A stretch of 37,272 bases of DNA from Fonticula alba ATCC 38817 (GCA_000388065.2 KB932208.1); one strand, 5' to 3'; shown: positions 8,001-31,907, numbered from the stretch's first letter. Made by a program: numbers and translations. Notes: generated by a model from the letters alone, not told the origin.

Positions 8001-11000
8001 CCTTCTGCATGGGAGACACACGGCAGCAGATGACGGTGCGGCACTGCAATGCCAAATCGAGGAAGCGCTGTCGATCGTGGCCAAGGGAGGACACATGGAG
8101 GGAGAGGGACCGAGGGAGAGAAAACAGCAAACAGAGCAAGAGACGGCCAGGAAGATGGACGGAAGCCAGGGAGCCAGGGGAGAAGGGGCGACGGGGGACA
8201 CCGGGGGTCAGCCCACAGAAGGACGGAGCAAGAAGAGCAACAAGGGCGGAAGAGAGGGGGAGGGGGAAGCAGCACGCCGCCGCAGCGAGCGAGCAAGCGA
8301 GCAACGTCCACGTACATCGCGCAGGTCTTGCGCATCCTCCCGCATGATGTACAGCAGGGCCGACCCGTCGATGACCAGCGACCGGTTCGGGGTGTCGTAG
8401 GGGTTGGAGGAAGCGAGTAAGTAGGGAGCGCGTGGGGGGGATATGTGCTCGGGCAGGCATGTGTCGCCCCCGCCCTGCCGCCGCCCGCCGCATGACGGCG
8501 CCCTGACAGGGTGTGGACAGGGGGGGGGGGCGCGAGGGGAAGGACCGCCGCGGCGCACCTGCATCGAAAGGGAATTGATGAACTGGAAGAAGAAGAGCAG
8601 CATGTTGAAAACCACCTGGATGAAGAACTGGTAAAGGATCAGCAGACTCTGCCGGTGGTAACTCCATGCGCCGTGGACCAGCAGCAGGCGCGTCAGGAAG
8701 CGGAACTGGCCGACGGCGTAATCCGCAGCGCGAACCGCCTGAGAGCCCTCCTCGCCGTGGACGCCCACGCCGATGGAGGCCGCCTGGATCATGGCCACGT
8801 CGTTGGCGCCGTCGCCGATGGCCAGCGTGTTGGAGGAAGACCGCTTGCGGACCAGCTGCACCATGTTGGCCTGGGAGCCGCGAGAAGAAGGACAGAGGGA
8901 AGGCGAGGGAGGGGGGAGGGAAAGGCGCATCAGAACCACCGGGAGCCGGGGAAAGGGGAGACGGAAAAAGACCGACCCCTCCCGAGAGGCAGAGCGGGCA
9001 GAGCGGGCATAGCGGGCAGAGCGGGCAGAGCGGGAGACATGGAGGCACCGAGCAGGAGAGGCCCACGAAAGACGCACCTTCTGCATGGGAGACACACGGC
9101 AGCAGATGACGGTGCGGCACTGCAATGCCAAATCGAGGAAGCGCTGTCGATCGTGGCCAAGGGAGGACACATGGAGGGAGAGGGACCGAGGGAGAGAAAA
9201 CAGCAAACAGAGCAAGAGACGGCGCGAGAAGAAGGGTCCCGATGTGCGTTTGTGCGTTTGTTTGCTTGTTTGTCAGCACGCGGGCAGGGAAGGCCGAGAT
9301 CCAGACACGACAACGTGCCCCCGAAGAAGAAGAAGAAGAAGAAGAAATACCACACGAAGGGCAGGCACGTACTACTTGACGGTGACCAGCAGCAGGGCCG
9401 CCGTGGTGGGGGCCGCCAAAAAGGCCACCCACGAGCGCGCGTCCGCTGTCAGCAGCTGCCGATAGATGCGATAATAGACATAGAAGTCCGAGGACAGGTT
9501 GAGCAGCTCGCCGGTGTAGAATTGCAGGAAGATGAAGACCGCCAGCGACCCGAGCAGCGACAGGACAATGATCAAGGTGATGCGCCTGAGGAGGCCGAGC
9601 AAGTGGGTGGACATCCGGGGGAGGGAGGGAGGAAGAGGAACGTGTCAGCCAGGGGGGGGGGGGCCTCGAAGGGCAGCAGAAGCGGCAGAACGCAGGAAGA
9701 GCGCAGGGGAACGAAGGCCGGGCCCGGCAGGCGGCACAGGCTGCCCTGCTCGGGAGCGCGACGCACGTCATGTCAACAATCAACACCGCCGACACAGTGA
9801 GCATGACCAGCGTGTAGAGCGTCGCGCCGAAGCTCATCATGGACACATGCTGCGGCGAGGCGGCTGCCAGGGAAAACAGCATGAGCAGCCCGGCCACCAT
9901 GGTGGCCATGAGAGACCGGATCCAGAAGACCCGCATGGAGAAGAGGGGCCGGATCTTCAGCGACCGATATGCCTCCGGGTGACTGAGGAGCTGGTTGGCC
10001 GACAGATGCCGGTCCAGCACGGCGGCCAACATGACCGGCAGACCGGTGAACACCGTGAAGAAGAAGATGTGAAGGAGGGCCTGGTACATGGTCTGCAGGG
10101 GTTGGAGGAAGCGAGTAAGTAGGGAGCGCGTGGGGGGGATATGTGCTCGGGCAGGCATGTGTCGCCCCCGCCCTGCCGCCGCCCGCCGCATGACGGCGCC
10201 CTGACAGGGTGTGGACAGGGGGGGGGGGCGCGAGGGGAAGGACCGCCGCGGCGCACCTGCATCGAAAGGGAATTGATGAACTGGAAGAAGAAGAGCAGCA
10301 TGTTGAAAACCACCTGGATGAAGAACTGGTAAAGGATCAGCAGACTCTGCCGGTGGTAACTCCATGCGCCGTGGACCAGCAGCAGGCGCGTCAGGAAGCG
10401 GAACTGGCCGACGGCGTAATCCGCAGCGCGAACCGCCTGAGAGCCCTCCTCGCCGTGGACGCCCACGCCGATGGAGGCCGCCTGGATCATGGCCACGTCG
10501 TTGGCGCCGTCGCCGATGGCCAGCGTGTTGGAGGAAGACCGCTTGCGGACCAGCTGCACCATGTTGGCCTGGGAGCCGCGAGAAGAAGGACAGAGGGAAG
10601 GCGAGGGAGGGGGGAGGGAAAGGCGCATCAGAACCACCGGGAGCCGGGGAAAGGGGAGACGGAAAAAGACCGACCCCTCCCGAGAGGCAGAGCGGGCAGA
10701 GCGGGCATAGCGGGCAGAGCGGGCATAGCGGGCAGAGCGGGCAGAGCGGGAGACATGGAGGCACCGAGCAGGAGAGGCCCACGAAAGACGCACCTTCTGC
10801 ATGGGAGACACACGGCAGCAGATGACGGTGCGGCACTGCAATGCCAAATCGAGGAAGCGCTGTCGATCGTGGCCAAGGGAGGACACATGGAGGGAGAGGG
10901 ACCGAGGGAGAGAAAACAGCAAACAGAGCAAGAGACGGCCAGGAAGATGGACGGAAGCCAGGGAGCCAGGGGAGAAGGGGCGACGGGGGACACCGGGGGT

Positions 11001-11627
11001 CAGCCCACAGAAGGACGGAGCAAGAAGAGCAACAAGGGCGGAAGAGAGGGGGAGGGGGAAGCAGCACGCCGCCGCAGCGAGCGAGCAAGCGAGCAACGTC
11101 CACGTACATCGCGCAGGTCTTGCGCATCCTCCCGCATGATGTACAGCAGGGCCGACCCGTCGATGACCAGCGACCGGTTCGGGGTGTCGTAGCTGCCCTG
11201 GCCGCCGGCGGTGGCCGCGCGAGTGCGCACCCGCACCGGGGCCACCGTGCCACTGCCAGCACCGGCCCGACCGGGCCCGGAGCCCGGGCCGCTGCCACCG
11301 GCAGCCACATTCCCGGCAGTGCCGGAGACCGGGCTACCACCGGCCGAGGCCGACCCCGGCGCCGCCGGCACCGACGACCCCCCGGCCATCTGGCTGGGCG
11401 TGGTGTCCGACATGAAGACAGCCGTGGTGCGCGAGGGGAGCGAGGCGGCCGCGCGAGCCAGCAGCCGACGCTGCCGCGCCCGCCGGGGCTTGTGCTGCGC
11501 GAAGAAGTCCAGCAGCATCTGGACATTGGGATCGCGCGCCGAGGAGGCACCCGGGCCCGGGGCAACCGCACCGTCGGCATCCAGCGTGGTGCCGCTCTCC
11601 GAGGCATCCACCTCGGAGGCCTTATCC

Positions 11628-11658
<31 letters not shown>

Positions 11659-14050
11659 TACTACCATCACCACCACCACCGGGGGACGGCTCAGTGGGGC
11701 TGCTGTCGCCCGTGGCACTGGCCGACACTTGCGGGGCCACGGTCAAGGCCGGCGAGGGGGTGATGATGATCTCCGTCTGCGAGTTCAACAGACGGCAGGA
11801 GTGCGCAATGTTGATGGCGGTCTCCTGCTTGTCGCCGGTCAGCACCCACAGGCGGATGCCGGCGCGCAGCAGCAGCTCAATGGACTCCGGCACGCCGGCC
11901 TGCAGGCGATCCTCGATGGCCGTGGCCCCCAGCAAGATGAGCTCCCTCTCGATGGCATCGGACGCGCGCTCCAGCGCCTCGTCGCGATTGGCCAGATCAT
12001 CGATGCCATCCAGGTAGTTGCTGCGCCAGTGCGCATACTCCCCCGGGGAGAGCTCGCGCCAGGCGATGCACAGCGTCCGCAGGCCCAACCGAGCGAAGGT
12101 ATTCAGCGCTCGCCGGGTGGACGCCACGGCGCGCTGCGTGTGCAGCACATCCGACAGGCCGTAGAAGCCGGCCGGCCGGCCGGCGATCTCGGCCGCCGGT
12201 GTCCCGGAGGCCGTGTCCCAGCCGGTGACCTGGGCACCACCGCCGCCCGTGCCAGGGCCCGAGCCGGCCACGATGGAAGACCCACCCGCACCGGGGCCCG
12301 GCCCGGGGAAGGCCCCCTCGGGCCCGGCCACGAAGGGAGCCAACCGCGAGAGGATCGTATCGTCGGCCCCCTTGCAGAAGAGCACCCGCCGGGGCGCGCC
12401 GCAGGCATGTCGGCCGGCCTCCGGCGGGAGCTCAATCACCACGCTCATGCGCTTGCGTGCCGAGGAGAAGTCATTGATGTGCAGAACGTGATACTTGCGA
12501 TCGACGGCCCCGAGCCCGCGGCCCTCCAACGGGTCGTAATCCGCCGGCGGGGTGGGCCCCGACCCGGCGCCCAGGGCATCGGCCCCGTCGGCCCCGGCGG
12601 CCTGCTGGCCCGCGGACCCGGTGACCGCCGCATGCAGCGCACGGAAGGCCCCCGCCAGCCGGGCCCCGATCGACCGCTTGGCCGGCCGGCTGATCGACGA
12701 GGCGTCGGTGCCGGCCAGCGAGGGAGTGCGCCCGATGCTGGTGCCATCGGCCTCCAGCTCGTCCTTGTCCCCGGGCGAGAGGAAGGACCCATCGGCCCCG
12801 AGGCCGTCGGCCTTGGCCTCGGCCTCGGCCAGGGCACGCGCGCGATCCGGCGGCAGGATGCCCCCCACCCGCACGAAGGCCACATCGATTTCCCGCTTGT
12901 GGAAGAAGTACCCACAGGACCGGGCCGCCCGGACCAGGGCATCCTCATCCGGCGAGGAGGCCCGGTAATTGATCATCCCCGGGGCCTGGAGCAAGCCATC
13001 CTCGGCCTCGGCCCCGGCCACCAGGGCCAGGCCCCCGTCGCCATCGGCCCCGCCGCCGGGACCCGCGCCGGTCAGGGACCCGGACCCGCGAGAAGCCCCC
13101 GAAGCCAAGGAAGCCACTGATCCGGCTGGACTGGCGCCCGAGGAGGCCGCCCCGGGGGCCGACAGGTCGCCCATGGGGATGGACACGCTGGCGCTGCTGC
13201 CCCCGGCCCCGGTGACCGGGGGCGGCGGCAGGGACAGGCCGCCAGGCCCATCCCCGGGGCTGGCCACCGACGGCCGGACCGGCGGGTCGGCCGGGCTCGG
13301 GGTCTTTTCCTGCTCGGCAGCCGACAGGGACACATCCTCCGGGATGACCGTCTGGCACACGGCAAGTGCCACCATGAAGGCATCGACCACCGACGGCCGG
13401 GCCACGCGCGAGGAGATCGACTCGGACCGCGGCCGGCCGGTGCCGGCCAAAACTTGCGACCCCATGCTCGAGGGGGGCACATACGGCGTGCCTTGGATGG
13501 CATCCAGGATGGAGCTCCGATCGAAGTAGGGAGCCTGCGTCCATGGGCAGGAGCGAATGGCCCAAGCCACCGGCCGGGTCAGCGAACAACCTCACGGAGG
13601 GGCCAAAGGGGCGGCAAGGGAAACCGGCCGGTGCCGGACGTACCCGCATGAAGCTCCCCTCGTCGGCGTACGGGCCGCCAAAGACCAGGCCGTCGATGAC
13701 ACAGCGCTGGAAGACCATCTTATTGCGCGTCAGGGTGCCGGTCTTGTCGGAGAAAATGTGCTCCACCTGCCCGAGCTGCTCATTGAGGTTGGTGGTGCTG
13801 GCCTTCGATGGAGGGTATGGCGGAGGCGGGGCCGGGGATCCATCGGCCGGGGGGGGCAGCGCCGGTGCCCGCAAGGCCGGGTCTTTGGCAATCAGGAATC
13901 CCTGAATGAAACGGGCAATTTCCAGCTGGAAGAACAGCCTGGGGGCGAGGGACATGTGTCAAGAGGTGGGCCGGCAGGGAGAGAAGGGAGAGGGAGGGAG
14001 GGGGAGGGAGCAGCGGACGAAGGAATAGGTAGAATCAAAAAGGAAGAAAG

Positions 14051-19656: not shown

Positions 19657-19729
19657 TTCCCATACCGGGACTCGAACCCGGGTCTCGTGGGTGAGAGCCA
19701 CGTATCCTAACCACCTAGACTATATGGGA
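19657..19729 (-). tRNA. trnE-CTC: tRNA-Glu (anticodon CTC), intronless, 73 nt
   Basis: Minus strand TCCCATA-TA-GTCTAGGTGGTTAGGATA-CGTGG-CTCTCAC-CCACG-AGAC-CCGGG-TTCGAGT-CCCGG-TATGGGA-A. Perfect acceptor, anticodon and T stems; A-box and B-box present; no encoded CCA. Confidence 0.97.
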
Positions 19730-20398
19730 GGGGTGGCTTTACAGCCGCACGGGGCCTATTTATTTCCTTGCTCTTCATGCGCCCCCCCCCCCGGCTCTCG
19801 GACCTGCCGACATGCTCGCCCACCCTCTCTTTCTCAGGCACCCGAGGCGGGAGAGAGGGGCCCATCCACACCGATGTATAGGCCTGCGCAAGAGCACCAC
19901 ACAGACCAAGATCCTCCCCGGTGCCGGCGGTACGCATCCTCCCAAGGAGGGCCCCACCCCCCCCCCCCCCCCCCGCGAGACGCCCAGGAGAAGGCGGGAG
20001 CGCACAGGGACAACTCTTCCGTTTTCAACAAGGACAGGGCGGTGTATTGTGGTGGGGCATGGCTGTGCACGCTCGGCGCGCGCACAGCCAAGTACAAGCC
20101 ACGCAGAGGGAGGGGGGAAGGGAGAAGGAGAAGGGAGGGGGAGAGGAGCAGAGTGGAGGGGGAACGGGGGGAATGGTGACATGGAAGAAGCCAGGCACAC
20201 ATCGCCACGAGGGGGAGATGAGCAGGGGGAGGAGAAGCACCTGCGCCCCAGCCCCAGCCCCCTACAAACAGGAGAGGGGAGAGGAAGGAGGCACGGCCCC
20301 CGCCCCCCCCCCCCCCCCCCATGATCGCCCCTGCACACACCTCCTCCTCTCGCCGCCGCCCCCTCCCCCTCTGGAGGGGAAAAGGGGACAGCCTCTCC

Positions 20399-21582
20399 TC
20401 AGCAGTCCACCTGCACCGGGCGGTATGCGCTGAAATAGTTGTTCGGAACCCAGCCAGAGCGCGTCGGATCGGTCGCCGAGCGGACAAACCACCACGACGA
20501 CTGCTCCAGGACGCTGGTCGGCGAGTCCGGGCTCATGGGCGTGTCCGGGGCCCCGGACACCGAGGTCGGGTCCTCCGGGTCGAAGGACTCCGAGCGAGAA
20601 ACCACCACGAACTTCTCCCCCATGGAGAAGGCCAGCTCATCCGGGTTCTCACACTCGGCCGGAGTCCGATCGAAGATGGCGAAGATCTCCTCGGCGGTCA
20701 GGAAGGAGTGGAGCTCGGTCTCAATGAGCTTGGCCGTATCCGGGCAGGAGGACAGCGTAAGCGGAGTGTCATCCTCGACATTGCGCGCCAGCAGGCTGGC
20801 CCCGGAGAGAATCAGCTGCCGGGCAACATCGAGGCTGCCACAGGACGCCGCGCCGTGCAGCGGGGTCCAGCCATCGACATCAAACTGCGCGGCAGAAGGG
20901 GCGGGGGGGGGGGGGAGAGGGAGAGAAAAAAAGAGATGGAGGATTCCGACCAAATGGAAGAGACGGCCGGGGTAAAGATGACAAACAGGGTGTTAGTGGA
21001 GCATCGAGAAGGAGACGCACACACCGCATGCCAAGGGCAGGAGGGTGGCAGAGCAGCAGCCCACGCTGAAGGACCACAGGCGCGCGCGCGCGCGCGCGGG
21101 CGCACGCTCCACGCGAAGGATGGCCACCCACACCGACCCGAGGGAGGGAACAAGGGGGGGGGAAGCAAGGAAGGAAGCCCCAACAGCCACGCACCACGTT
21201 CGGCCGAGCGCCCTTGCTCAGCAGGTATTCGGTGATGTCGACATAGCCATTGCAGGCCGCGCAGTGGAGCGGCGTCAAGCCTTCGTCATTGGACCGATCC
21301 ACCACCGGGATATGGTCGTCCACCGGCCGGTAGCCGGTCGTCGAGCCGGGAGCCGGAACGCCAGTCGCAGGGGCGCCGGTGCGGCGCGGACCGGCCGCCC
21401 CCAGCGGCGGTGTCGAGTCCGACTCCACGCACTTCTTCACCAGATCCAGGTCCCCGTAGAAGGCCCCATCGAGGATGAGCACCGCCAGGTTGAAGCGCAG
21501 ATCCCGACGAGGAGTGGACTTGGTGTTGGAAGGCTTGAGGATGGACTTGGGCGGCCGCTTGGGGCCGGGACCAGCAGCAGCA

Positions 21583-21617
<35 letters not shown>

Positions 21618-22992
21618 GACACCCGCACCGGCATCGGCGCCGGACGCCGGGGCAACTACCCCCGGCGCGGGGGACACCGCCGTCGCCTCCGGGGTCGCCT
21701 GCTCGCGGACATTCGCCGGGATCAAGGTCGGCGACGGCTGTGCCGAAGGAGGCTTGCCGGGGCCGGGGCTGGCGCCGGGGCTGGACCCGGCCGCGGCGCT
21801 GCCACTGCCGGTGCCCGCTGCCGCCCCGGCGGGAGATCCCTTGGCCTGGGGAGGGGAGGGCGCCCGCAGGGCGGCCGCCAAATCGGCCACCAGCGGCGTC
21901 GAGGAGGCCGACCCGGCGGCGCTGCTGGGCGCCGGCCCGGCCGGGGTCTCACGCGCCTCGAGGCGGGCGCACCGCCTGGCCAGGCGCGCCACCTCCAGCT
22001 GGGATTTGGACAGCTCGGCGTTGGCCATCTCCAGGGCGGTCTCCGACTGGCTCAGAGCCTGGCGCGTGGTGCGAAGCTCCGTGTCCGAGTCGAGGGCCTG
22101 GCGCTCGGCCGCCCGCAGCGACGTCTCCAGGGTCTCGATCTGGCGCCGGAGCTCCGCGAGCTGGCTGTCAAACTGCCAGGAGGGGAAGGGCCACGTTCGG
22201 GCAGACCACACCGCGGCCAAGAGGGCGCCACATCCGAGCAGGACATTCGCCAGGAGCATGGTCAGTGGTAGCACATACCAATGGAAGGATGGGTCGGGGG
22301 TGTCACGCGGGAGAGGGGGAGGGGGGGAGGGGGAGAGATGGAGAGATGAAGAGATGGAGAGATGAAGAGATGGAGAGATGGAGAGATGGAGAGATGGAGA
22401 GATNNNNNNNNNNNNNNNNNNNNNNNNNNNNNNNNNNNNNNNNNNNNNNNNNNNNNNNNNNNNNNNNNNNNNNNNNNNNNNNNNNNNNNNNNNNNNNNNN
22501 NNNNNNNNNNNNNNNNNNNNNNNNNNNNNNNNNNNNNNNNNNNNNNNNNNNNNNNNNNNNNNNNNNNNNNNNNNNNNNNNNNNNNNNNNNNNNNNNNNNN
22601 NNNNNNNNNNNNNNNNNNNNNNNNNNNNNNNNNNNNNNNNNNNNNNNNNNNNNNNNNNNNNNNNNNNNNNNNNNNNNNNNNNNNNNNNNNNNNNNNNNNN
22701 NNNNNNNNNNNNNNNNNNNNNNNNNNNNNNNNNNNNNNNNNNNNNNNNNNNNNNNNNNNNNNNNNNNNNNNNNNNNNNNNNNNNNNNNNNNNNNNNNNNN
22801 NNNNNNNNNNNNNNNNNNNNNNNNNNNNNNNNNNNNNNNNNNNNNNNNNNNNNNNNNNNNNNNNNNNNNNNNNNNNNNNNNNNNNNNNNNNNNNNNNNNN
22901 NNNNNNNNNNNNNNNNNNNNNNNNNNNNNNNNNNNNNNNNNNNNNNNNNNNNNNNNNNNNNNNNNNNNNNNNNNNNNNNNNNNNGAGAGCTG

Positions 22993-23037
<45 letters not shown>

Positions 23038-24885
23038 AAGAGAGAGAGAAAGAGAAAGAGAAAGAGAAAGAGAAAGAGAAAGAGAAAGAGAAAGAGAAAG
23101 AGAGATGGAGAGATGAAGAGATGGAGAGATGGAGAGATGGAGAGATGGAGAGATGGAGAGAGAGAGAGAGAGAGAGAGGAAGAAAGAAGGCAGGAGCGGG
23201 GAGCCCCCTCTGGGGACACGGGCCGGGAAGCATACCTTGGCCTGCGTCGGGCTCGGGTTGATGGTGGATGCCAGGCGCGTCTCCAGGTCGGCCAGGACCG
23301 CGCGGGCCTTGTTCTCGGCCGACACGGCCCGGCTCTCGGCCGATTCCAGTCGCGACCGGGCCAGTGCCGCCTCGGATGTGGCCGAAGCCAGCTGCGTCTC
23401 CAGGCTGCCAATGCGCCGCTGCAAGGTGGCCACCTCGGACTCGGTGACGGTCAGCTTGTTCTCGACCGACGTGCGAGCCTGGCGCTCTTCCGAGAAGAGG
23501 GTCTGTGCCTCGCGCACGAGGCGCTCCAAATCCTCGATGTCCCCGGGGCTGAAGACCGGCGAGGGGATGCCGGAGTGCGGCGGCCGGGACAGCATGCGCA
23601 GGTTCTCCTCTTCGAGGTTTTGCTCGCGGAGCTTGGCCGCCGCCAGTTCGTGGCGCAGGTGCAGGATCTCGCTCTGCTTCTGGGCCAGCCCCTCGCGCAG
23701 CTTGCGCAGGGTGTTCGGGGCGTTGGCTGCACGTCCGACCGCGAGGGGAAGGGGGGAGCCACGCGGAGAAGGGAATCCAGCGGNNNNNNNNNNNNNNNNN
23801 NNNNNNNNNNNNNNNNNNNNNNNNNNNNNNNNNNNNNNNNNNNGGGGGGGGGATCAGAGGACAGTCCTGGGTGGGAAAATCCCCCAAAAGACGGGAGGGG
23901 GGCAGCGGGCGAGGAGGCCAACAAGGCACCACGCACTATCCTCCTCGAAGAGCTGGTCGAAGCGGCTCTGGGCTGAGCGCTTCTTCATGTCCTTGAGGCT
24001 GGGCCGCGAGTCGGTGTTACTGCGCGAGAAGTCGGCATTTTCCGAGAGCTGGAGGAGAGAGAGAGAGAGAGAGAGAGGGCCGGCGGAGGATGAGTGAGCA
24101 CATGATGGACAAGCAGCGAGCAAGAGAGAGAGAGAGAGAGAGAGCAGGGGGGGAGAAGATGCCAAGGGCGGGGGAGCAGGGGAGGAACCACCCGGGCGCA
24201 CATTCTCAAGCATGGACGCCTGCTGGTCTAGCTCAACCAGCTCATCCTTCAGGAGGCGGTTCATTTGCTGGAGCTTGCGCTTGAACAGAGCCGCATCCTC
24301 GGGGGACATGTCCTTGGCAGCCTCGAGGAAGGCCTAAGAGGTCCGGGGGGGAGGGGGACGAGAAATGTGCGTGTACATGGTGTCAATCGGCGATGTGCAT
24401 GGATGCGCATGTGTGTGCGCGCGCGCGCACGCGTGCGAGGCCAGAGGCGGCGGCCCTCGGGGGCCGGGGGCCCGCACAAGGGCTCCAGCGACGTACTGCC
24501 TGGTCGAAGATGTGGTCGTCGTGTGGGCCGTCGGACGTGGGGCTGGTCGGGGTAGCGGTGGCAGTGGCAGTGGTCGATGCCGGGGCAACGACAGCCTTGG
24601 TCACGACGGGGGAGCCAACCCCGGGCGAGGAGGGCGTGCTGCTGAGCGACTCCACCGACACCGCATGCATGTAGCTCGCGCCGTAGACCTTCTTGGACTT
24701 GGGCGGGACGCCGGCGGCCGGAGAGCCGGGAACCGGGGTCTTGGAGGGATCCTCGGCCGTTTGGATGCCAGTGGTGGCGTCGGTGGAGCCGGCACCAGAG
24801 GAGGCTGGCCGCTGGGCGGCGTCCGGACCGGCGGCCGCGTCAGCCGCCGCGCCACCACCAAAGACAGCCTGATGAGGCAGGGGGG

Positions 24886-24936
<51 letters not shown>

Positions 24937-25052
24937 CGGGCGAGGGAAGCACATGGATAGATGGTGTGGTTAGGAAAGGCCACCAGGCTGGCATGTGGGC
25001 GCGTGAGGATGGGGACAGGCTGACACACCTGAAAGATCCGACCTGAAAGCAT
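20399..25052 (-). CDS. ASPP (53BP2/PPP1R13)-like protein: low-complexity N-terminus, coiled coils, Pro/Ala linker, SILK + RLxF, ankyrin repeats, C-terminal SH3 (~860 aa or more). Exons: 25052-25029 (tentative), 24868-24497, 24333-24202, 24048-23937, 23726-23236, [possible exon in gap], 22172-21195, 20884-20399
   Basis: RRDLRFNLAVLILDGAFYGDLDLVKKC..SNDEGLTPLHCAACNGYVDITEYLLSKGARPNV|FDVDGWTPLHGAASCGSLDVARQLILSGASLLA, then SH3 IFAIFD..NPDELAFSMGE..SSWWFVR..SGWVPNNYFSAY. This follows the ASPP C-terminal signature (RVKFNPLALLLD..NDEGITALH..DSDGWTPLHCAASC..WWWAR..GYVPRNLLGLY, recalled family sequence). Heptad-rich exons upstream; all junctions in phase. The start codon is uncertain. Confidence 0.85.
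22332..23178. repeat. Compound intronic satellite: (GAGAGATG/AAGAGATG)n on both sides of a gap, plus (GA)n and (GAAAGA)n
   Basis: 8-mer arrays at ~22332-22403 and ~23101-23160; (GA)n at ~22997-23032; (GAAAGA)n at ~23044-23100. Confidence 0.92.
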
Positions 25053-29844: not shown

Positions 29845-31907
29845 CTAGGCGGAGCCGGCCTCCTTCTGCTGCAGAGCGGCATCAATCTCACCGGCCCGGC
29901 GGTCGCGGAGGATGTTCCCGATGAACAGCTCGCCGGCCTTGTACGACGAGCGAACCAGCGGCCCGGAGGCGGTATACACGAAGCCCAGCTCCTTGCCACG
30001 CTGCTCCCAGTACTTGAACTTGTCCGGGTGCACGTACTCCGACACCTTCATGTGGCCCTTGGTCGGGCGCATGTACTGCCCGAGGGTGACGCAGTCGACC
30101 CCATGGGCGCGGAGATCGCGCATGGTCTGCTCCACCTCCTCGTCGGTCTCGCCGACACCGAGCATGATGGAGGACTTGGTGATCAGGTCGGGGCGGACCT
30201 CCTTGGCGCGCTTCAGCACATTCAGCGACTGGTGGTAGCCGGCCCGGCGGTCGCGAACCACACCCTGGAGCTGTGGCGGCCGGCGCGGGGCGAGGAGGAG
30301 CGGGCGTGGAGAGGGCGGGTGTGCGGGCATTTTTCCCGCACAAAACCCGCGCGCGTGGGGGCGTGAGTGAGCTGCTCGCGGGGGAGGAGCAATGGCAGGA
30401 GAGGCCGGGGGGCAAGAGCAGCAGGGGCGAGGGCCGCCTTGTGGAGGGACGCACGCGCTCGACGGTCTCCATGTTGTGGGCATACACGTCCAAGCCGGAG
30501 AGAGCGACCTGCTCGACGCCAGAAAGGTCGCCGGCGAAGTCGCCGGTCAGACACTCGACCAGCATATCGGGCTTCCTGTGGATGGGAACCATCGGCGCAA
30601 ATACCCGCAGACACATGCGTATGCGCATGCCCGGCCCAAGGATGGCTGGAGGGAGGGAGGGAGGGGAGACAGCGGAGCAGGGCACATGGTCAGCGGGAAG
30701 GGTGTGGACAGCCACCAGCAGGGCCCCGCCAGAGGCAAAGCAAAGAGGGCGGTCGCCAGGGACGGACCGGGACTTGATCTCGCGGACGGTCTGGGCAAAG
30801 TGCGCAGCCCCACCATCGGCCAGGTCTGAGGAAATGAGAGAGCGAGGGAAGCACCGCCGAGGGGTTAGCAAGCATGCCGTCTGAATAATCCCACCATTAC
30901 CGCGCGGACCGCTTGTCTCCCCCGCCCCGGCCCCCTCTGTGCGCATGCATGGCTGCGGCTGCACGAGCGAATGGATGCCCTTTCCGGAGCCCAGCACGGG
31001 GGGAGGGGGGAGGGGAGGGGGGCAAAGCTGCCGGCGACGCACCGTCACGATCGACACTGGTAAGCACAACGTAGCCGAGCTTCCAGCGGGACACGGCCTC
31101 GGCCGTGTTGATGGGCTCCATCGGATCGAGCGGGGGCGGGGCATTGGACGTCTTGACCGCGCAGAAGCGGCAGGCACGGGTGCAAGTGTCGCCCATGATC
31201 TGCGCCAAGCCCGAGGGAAGAGGGTCAGGCAGCGGGGGTTTTGGTCAGTCACCCGAGGGAACGGAAGAGCGGCAATGTCGGCCAGCAGACGGTGAGCCCC
31301 TCCCCCGCTGGCAGCGACACAAACAGGCAGACGCCCGGCCCTGCAGCATGAGGGGGGCCGGGACGCGCGGCCACGCGCCACGCACCATGATCGTGGCAGT
31401 GGCAGTGCCCTCCTCGCCACCCCAGCACTCGCCCATGTTCGGGCACTTGGCCTCCTCGCAGACGGTGGCCAGGCCGAGCTCACGCAGGTTGGACCGGATC
31501 CGAGCAAAGTTCGGACCCGAGGGGAGGGCGATTTTCGCCCAGGGCGGGACGCGGGAGACGGCCTTGCGCGGGCCGCGGGCCTTGGCCGGGGCGGCGTTCG
31601 GATCCGACGCGGCGAAGGCCGCGTACGCGGCATTCATGGCCTCCATGTCCGGGCTACCGGCCGGCACGCCGCACATGGCCGCCGCATTCAGAGACCCGGA
31701 AGAGGCGAAGTCCCCGAGCCCGGGACCGGTGGAGGCTGCCTGGCGCAGGGCCTCCAGCCGGCTGCCAGCGGCCGGGGCATTGGCCTCCGAGGAGGATGAG
31801 GACATCTGCCGAGCGGCGGCGGCGGCAGCGCCAGCAGGGCCGGCCAGCGAGACGGCCACCTGGCGCCGAGCGGCCGCGATGGCCGTATGACGCGCGGCAA
31901 GGAACAT
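29845..31907 (-). CDS. LIP5: Mitochondrial lipoyl synthase (radical SAM; LIP5/LIAS/lipA), 427 aa. Exons 31907-31386, 31199-31043, 30825-30768, 30575-30455, 30270-29845
   Basis: [12 protein letters not shown] (CX4CX5C), CTRACRFC (CX3CX2C), [67 protein letters not shown]. Arg-rich, acid-free N-terminal presequence (MFLAARH..ARQMSS). Exon lengths sum to 1284 nt in frame. Confidence 0.97.

Follow-up and report, generated by a model that had tools for sequence, protein, structure and literature searches.

A probable ASPP-type regulatory scaffold of protein phosphatase 1 encoded by Fonticula alba

We have analysed a 37,272-nucleotide stretch of DNA from Fonticula alba ATCC 38817 (GCA_000388065.2 KB932208.1), referred to here as the window, and conclude from its sequence that the product of a gene on the minus strand is probably a scaffold of the ASPP type (PPP1R13-like) that regulates protein phosphatase 1 (PP1). 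Work on the ASPPs has dealt with them as animal proteins and with their roles in cell junctions, Hippo/YAP signalling, and p53 control. The window is approximately 70% G+C and contains several N gaps and intron-containing genes; the region of interest is bounded by a TGA stop codon (20401-20399) and a CAG acceptor (22173|22172). Two minus-strand exons, exon A with 326 codons (22172-21195) and exon B with 161 codons (20884-20402), are separated by a 310-nt phase-0 intron (21194-20885) that interrupts the ankyrin block. Together they encode, in order, a coiled coil, an Ala/Pro/Ser-rich linker, KSILK, RDLRF, four ankyrin repeats, and a terminal SH3 domain. This is the complete C-terminal ASPP layout that had been proposed in the initial annotation of this DNA, and it was confirmed by translation and by Pfam, which placed Ank at residues 298-325 of exon A and 4-35 of exon B and SH3_1/SH3_2 at residues 69-150 of exon B; the SH3 domain ends the protein, with 11 residues between it and the stop codon. 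The features of the module are as follows.

21933 to 22172, minus strand: coiled coil, exon A residues 1-80 (weak coiled-coil Pfam matches).
21549 to 21932, minus strand: disordered linker, exon A residues 81-208, rich in Ala, Pro, Ser, and Gly (43 Ala, 23 Pro, 16 Ser, and 16 Gly of 128 residues).
21534 to 21548, minus strand: KSILK, a canonical SILK-type PP1-docking motif (from the translation), aligned to SVLR of iASPP chain 6dcx_C.
21507 to 21533, minus strand: basic, Ser/Thr-rich spacer of 9 residues, PSNTKSTPR (from the translation).
21492 to 21506, minus strand: RDLRF, an RVxF-like motif with Leu at the Val position and Arg one residue further out, aligned to RARL (iASPP) and RVKF (ASPP2).
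21423 to 21491, minus strand: first ankyrin repeat, of the N-cap type, containing D235 and D241; ungapped alignment to ankyrin 1 of ASPP2 (4a63_B) and of iASPP.
21300 to 21407, minus strand: insertion of about 36 residues, rich in Gly, Pro, Ala, and Thr, in the ankyrin 1-2 loop; outside the Protein Data Bank (PDB) alignments, with third codon positions mostly G/C.
21198 to 21281, minus strand: ankyrin repeat 2 (canonical; Pfam Ank, E = 1.2e-8, residues 298-325).
20885 to 21194, minus strand: intron between exons A and B, 310 nt, GTGCGT...CAG, phase 0, CT-rich, with in-frame stop codons.
20780 to 20875, minus strand: ankyrin repeat 3 (canonical, GWTPLHxAASC signature; Pfam Ank, E = 1.7e-7; AlphaFold2 predicted local distance difference test [pLDDT] scores of 96-98).
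20681 to 20779, minus strand: ankyrin repeat 4, a degenerate C-cap, with the segment that joins it to the SH3 domain (AlphaFold2 helices 48-61 and 64-71; no PDB sequence match of its own).
20435 to 20680, minus strand: SH3 domain, the last of the protein (Pfam SH3_1, 24.2 bits; SH3_2, residues 69-150; two-piece alignments to the Fyn SH3 domain).
20495 to 20596, minus strand: n-Src loop insertion of about 30 residues, with 7 acidic and 0 basic residues and three Ser/Thr-Pro sites; it breaks every SH3 alignment, and its third codon positions are all G/C.
20399 to 20401, minus strand: stop codon TGA (read from the sequence).

The positions of KSILK and RDLRF, the 9 residues between them, and the continuation of RDLRF directly into NLAVLILDG agree with the initial annotation; the minus-strand translation of 21492-21548 reads KSILKPSNTKSTPRRDLRF. 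The upstream coiled coils that it described are also present, in residues 1-80 of exon A and in a further upstream exon, E5. The 128-residue linker (34% Ala, 18% Pro) lies where the ASPPs have their Pro-rich region. Several hallmarks of that family, to which PPP1R13B, TP53BP2, PPP1R13L, Drosophila ASPP, and C. elegans APE-1 belong, can be recognized in the module: four C-terminal ankyrin repeats are followed by a protein-ending SH3 domain; an RVxF-type motif, though degenerate (Leu for Val), immediately precedes ankyrin 1; the residues that contact PP1 in the ASPP2:PP1 structure appear to be kept, by tool alignment for ankyrin 1 and by inference for the SH3 domain; and a Pro-rich and coiled-coil region precedes the ankyrins, with a probable link to the upstream exons.

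Across exons A and B, the patterns [GS][IV]L[KR] and [KR]x0-1[VIL]x[FW] each have a single match. When the upstream residues were shuffled 200,000 times with their composition preserved, a SILK motif fell within 40 residues upstream in 0.25% of the shuffles and an RVxF-like motif ended exactly at the ankyrin boundary in 0.0175%; the two together did not occur once. Because the joint arrangement was found in 0 of 200,000 shuffles, the SILK/RVxF-like pair at the ankyrin boundary is not a product of chance. Both the SILK and the RVxF motifs of iASPP are reportedly bound to PP1c in the structure attributed to Zhou et al. in 2019 (PDB 6DCX). The SILK motif has been widened experimentally to G/S-I/V-L-K (PMC9813921). 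In the crystal of Inhibitor-3 with PP1, the phosphatase binds both a SILK-type string and KVEW; 12 residues lie between their key positions, and the spacer is basic and disordered and lies over an acidic patch (PMC10066265). Simultaneous docking of SILK and RVxF on PP1 would be geometrically reasonable for the Fonticula protein as well, since 14 residues separate the Ile position of SILK from the Val position of RVxF, compared with 12 in Inhibitor-3, and the spacer carries three basic residues.

The most informative query for kinship was a 56-residue piece (21566-21399) that contains the SILK motif, the spacer, the RVxF-like motif, and ankyrin 1, and that was compared with 177,635 distinct PDB sequences. 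At E ≤ 10 it matched only five of these, four of which belong to the ASPP family: iASPP chain 6dcx_C, from a PP1 co-crystal (the best match), iASPP 2vge_A, a p63-iASPP fusion (9gfo), and ASPP2 4a63_B. MYPT1 was absent from the matches to this piece at that threshold. The alignment is collinear, with SILK on SVLR of iASPP, RDLRF on RARL/RVKF, and then an ungapped ankyrin 1. The score was 20.0 bits for the iASPP chain in which the docking segment is present and 12.3 bits for the chain that has ankyrin 1 alone; thus, the docking segment itself adds signal. The alignment suggests that a SILK-type motif some 13 to 14 residues before RVxF is an ancient element of the docking segment in ASPPs. Whole-exon searches, run one exon at a time, were uninformative, with the summed scores of many-repeat ankyrin proteins dominating both the PDB and an exhaustive library. 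In a language-model feature search, the nearest cluster to exon B was "ASPP1-like" (0.97, 182 shared features), with OSTF1 and caskin behind it; for the ankyrin 1-2 piece, the clusters obtained were generic ankyrin ones only. Foldseek aligned ASPP2, and no other chain, across all of exon B (158 columns), on a model in which the SH3 part is poor.

ASPP2 grips PP1 by three contacts, made by RVKF, by acidic residues in ankyrin 1, and by the SH3 domain (PMC6377682), and its ankyrin 1 residues D932 and E938 are bonded to PP1 R261 (Bertran et al. 2019, PMC6377682). D235 and D241 of the Fonticula protein align to these two residues. Ankyrin 4 is visible solely as two helices in the AlphaFold2 model. 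The insertions in the ankyrin loop and the n-Src loop are best read as coding, because their third codon positions are G/C rich. The ASPP2 SH3 domain holds PxxPxR through W1066, D1074, E1075, E1094, W1097, P1110, N1112, and L1113 (PMC6377682). When these contacts were mapped through canonical SH3 positions with the Fyn alignment, the Fonticula domain appeared to retain Asp-Glu in the RT loop, the first Trp in WW, and Pro, Asn, and Tyr in the PxNY segment, which would be equivalent to D1074/E1075, W1097, P1110, and N1112 of ASPP2. A 60-nt intron inside the SH3 insertion was considered and rejected: the insertion has G/C at every third codon position, the donor would be the atypical GTGTCC, and no other intron of the gene is shorter than 150 nt.

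Upstream of exon A, we propose four exons, E2 to E5, with consistent phases, and a possible 8-codon start exon, as follows.

25029 to 25052, minus strand: possible exon E1 (ATG, 8 codons, donor GTGTGT), proposed from the sequence alone.
24497 to 24868, minus strand: exon E2, 124 residues, rich in Ser, Thr, Pro, and Ala and probably disordered (CAG acceptor, GTACGT donor, open frame; no Pfam family).
24202 to 24333, minus strand: exon E3, 44 residues, helical or coiled-coil-like (TAG acceptor, GTGCGC donor, phase 0; no Pfam family).
23937 to 24048, minus strand: exon E4, 37 codons and one further base, joined in phase 1 to the next exon (CAG acceptor, GTGCGT donor; split codon A|CC completed by E5).
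23236 to 23726, minus strand: exon E5, about 163 residues of coiled coil (sub-threshold Pfam coiled-coil families; donor GTATGC, phase 0).

Three of the six donors in the ASPP-like gene are of the GTGCGY type. Pfam identified no known domain in E2 to E5, giving sub-threshold coiled-coil matches only. The junction between E5 and exon A crosses an assembly gap, and the two were joined on phase and on matching coiled-coil composition; the full protein would be approximately 864 residues, provided that no exon is hidden in that gap. The gene model may be wrong in part, which we consider rather unlikely: exon A might extend to an in-frame ATG at 22257, the upstream coiled-coil exons then belonging to another gene, or an exon might lie in the assembly gap. 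Between this ATG and 22173 the frame is open and about 83% of third positions are G/C, and the E5-exon A junction does span an N gap; however, there is a good polypyrimidine tract and a CAG acceptor at 22173, the coiled-coil style carries over from E5 to exon A, and the phases agree. Positions 20350-22400 were also compared with sequencing runs. Those that contain the stretch comprise DNA and probable RNA runs from 2012 that share one organism label, DNA from 2025 with a second label, and soil and sediment metagenomes. The four probable RNA runs contain 0.71 of the sampled words of 20350-22400, equal to the exonic share of that stretch, and this value is slightly nearer to that expected for a start at 22172 (0.72) than for one at 22257 (at least 0.76). 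The C-terminal ASPP-like module is the same under either gene model.

Two further observations concern this region. An ATG at 22257 (22173-22257, minus strand) would add a 29-residue hydrophobic, signal-anchor-like N terminus, which could represent a membrane-anchored isoform or mere intron sequence. In addition, the same CT-rich short repeats (CATCTCTC-like units) are found at approximately 22330-22403 and at 22984-23170, on either side of the large N gap, which may be a collapsed repeat within the intron.

A number of results weigh against membership of the ASPP family, which the initial annotation had claimed. RDLRF does not pass the strict [VI] form of the RVxF pattern. The best E value obtained with the 56-residue piece is just 0.0067, and the piece is short. 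With ankyrins 3-4, MYPT1 scored 61.5 bits and ASPP2 was outside the best 60 PDB matches; likewise, Foldseek found 42% identity to MYPT1 (1s70_B) over 67 columns covering these two repeats. Among PDB sequences, pieces of the SH3 domain match Fyn, Eps8, and Nck better than ASPP, and the piece comprising ankyrin 4 and the SH3 domain's N-terminal half had no match, leaving the SH3 domain without an ASPP-specific signal. The ALYDY motif reads AIFDR, in which the first aromatic residue is Phe and the second Tyr is replaced by Arg; it is the Arg that counts against the assignment. AlphaFold2 gave a pLDDT of 39 for exon B alone, and with an ankyrin-only alignment the repeats were modelled well (pLDDT 96-98) and the SH3 part poorly. 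No Pfam family corresponding to an N-terminal RA/ubiquitin-like domain was found in E2 to E5, the true N terminus being uncertain. Such a domain belongs to ASPP1/2 and is not universal across the ASPP family. Finally, no orthologue in other organisms was found in the protein library, in the exhaustive HMMER search, or in metagenome searches. What stands of the claimed membership is the layout, the docking segment with ankyrin 1, which is specific to iASPP/ASPP2, and the PP1-contact residues; ankyrins 3-4 and the SH3 domain have no sequence that can be recognized as ASPP specific, and the RA domain was not seen.

These results bear on the principal alternative, namely, that the gene encodes a member of a wider class of RVxF-ankyrin PP1-targeting proteins, MYPT related or lineage specific, that gained a C-terminal SH3 domain independently and works like an ASPP without ASPP descent. 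It would account for the higher scores of ankyrins 3-4 with MYPT1 than with ASPP2 and for an SH3 domain that carries no ASPP-specific signal. MYPT1 (PPP1R12A; 1S70 chain B) does share with the Fonticula protein an RVxF motif directly before ankyrin 1 and a GWxPLHxAASC-type repeat. MYPT1 has eight N-terminal repeats and a MyPhoNE motif, not SILK, and it has no SH3 domain. The docking segment and ankyrin 1 match iASPP and ASPP2, however, and the ankyrin 1 segment of MYPT1 has no match to the Fonticula piece at E ≤ 10. Nor are the hallmarks of the MYPT (PPP1R12) proteins present: in our reading of exon A there is SILK in place of MyPhoNE, there are four repeats instead of eight, a terminal SH3 domain closes the protein, and the module is C-terminal and, as in the ASPPs, follows coiled coils and a linker rich in Pro and Ala. 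The comparison of the ANK-SH3 region with ASPP and MYPT1 gave a divided answer, in that the docking segment and ankyrin 1 find ASPPs without MYPT1, whereas MYPT1 does equally well or better with ankyrins 3-4. We regard independent gain of the SH3 domain as unlikely. It is very improbable that the protein is a common ankyrin-SH3 adaptor without PP1 binding, in which the SILK and RVxF-like strings would be incidental: short linear motifs do yield many false positives, and RDLRF is non-canonical, but both motifs fell at the exact place in none of the shuffles, the docking segment aligns residue for residue to that of an iASPP chain from a PP1 co-crystal, and the acidic contacts of ankyrin 1 are kept.

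Among the closest known systems is human iASPP (PPP1R13L; 6DCX chain C, 2VGE), which has the same order of elements: a SILK-like string (SVLR), a basic spacer, an RVxF-like motif (RARL), ankyrins, and a terminal SH3 domain. The docking segment has its best PDB match in iASPP, and the RVxF motif is non-canonical in both proteins. Unlike iASPP, the Fonticula protein has a canonical SILK motif, Phe instead of Leu at the last RVxF position, one insertion (about 36 residues) that separates ankyrins 1 and 2 and another (about 30 residues) in its n-Src loop, and AIFDR for ALYDY, and overall similarity past ankyrin 1 is low. Human ASPP2 (TP53BP2; 4A63) resembles it in that RVKF abuts ankyrin 1, D932/E938 correspond to D235/D241, the SH3 residues that hold PxxPxR appear to be kept, and the n-Src loop is acidic; in contrast, the alignment contains no SILK-like string of ASPP2, and the ubiquitin-like domain of ASPP2 was not found in the Fonticula protein. 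ASPP2 itself binds p53. Inhibitor-3 (PPP1R11) and KNL1-type tandems share a SILK motif N-terminal to RVxF and a short basic spacer, but they are disordered inhibitors or proteins of the kinetochore, and they have no ankyrin-SH3 module.

If the protein is an ASPP-type scaffold, it can be envisioned that PP1c would be gripped at three or four points. SILK would occupy the SILK pocket and RDLRF the RVxF groove, D235 and D241 of ankyrin 1 would face Lys260/Arg261 of PP1, and the SH3 domain would hold PxxPxR of the PP1 C-terminal tail, with the enlarged acidic n-Src loop perhaps reading basic residues of the tail. The catalytic cleft would be left open, as in the ASPP2:PP1 structure, and the protein would therefore be a targeting and concentrating subunit and not an inhibitor. 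The N-terminal coiled coils may set its location or oligomeric state, and the three Ser/Thr-Pro sites of the n-Src loop, together with the Ser/Thr-rich spacer, possibly allow control by phosphorylation.

Word searches of the protein library with the Fonticula sequence returned generic ankyrin proteins only, with no ASPP and no self match. In the exhaustive HMMER search with exon B, the best 150 matches were giant multi-repeat ankyrin proteins, none of which had an SH3 domain as judged by Pfam, BLASTP, and phmmer with the SH3 part. Neither the word index nor the exhaustive library contained a self match or a protein at least 50% identical along exon B. Since there was no self match in the protein libraries searched, the gene model seems to be missing from public annotation, which suggests that it is absent from public protein sets; comparative studies would have overlooked a gene that is apparently missing from the sets searched. 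Literature searches found nothing that ties ASPP to unicellular lineages. Metagenome scans returned one unrelated, AT-rich ankyrin contig only. That contig (L001, 3468-4874) carries two adjacent ankyrin genes with a common C-terminal tail, KxWRPWNHxKYPIKYR, and is unrelated to the ASPP-like gene.

Other features of the window lie on the same strand. A tRNA-Glu (CTC) gene at 19657-19729 (minus strand) was identified by ARAGORN and by Rfam (63.5 bits; the Rfam scan covered 1-22300), about 670 bp downstream of the stop codon of the ASPP-like gene. Exons of a P4-type phospholipid flippase are found at approximately 8200-13570 (minus strand; Pfam PhoLip_ATPase_C, E = 3.8e-19, and Cation_ATPase, E = 4e-8). 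An open reading frame at 29848-30483 (minus strand) has a weak match to the end of the Radical_SAM profile, below the Pfam cutoff (E = 5.8e-5, 23.8 bits), and is probably one exon of a larger gene.

The NCBI taxonomy places F. alba in the Opisthokonta, order Rotosphaerida. The p53/63/73 family has been reported in several unicellular holozoans (PMC8061703), and our searches of the literature on this family in Holomycota found nothing. Whether p53 or PP1 is the primary partner of the ASPPs is debated, binding to PP1 being approximately 100-fold tighter (PMC12543280). The suggestion made in the initial annotation, that the ASPP-PP1 module arose before p53 or works without it, is plausible. We tentatively propose, as a scenario that is quite possible but falls short of being favored, that a complete PP1-docking module, with SILK and RVxF motifs, an acidic face on ankyrin 1, and an SH3 domain, was present in the animal-fungal ancestor, was kept in the Fonticula lineage, and was lost in most fungi; the ASPPs would at first have been scaffolds for PP1, and binding of p53 would have been added later, in animals or holozoans. 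If the assignment is correct, an ASPP member in a unicellular, aggregating relative of the fungi would date the scaffold to before animals. If this organism has no p53 family, it would provide a natural setting for a role of ASPP and PP1 without p53 or epithelial junctions.

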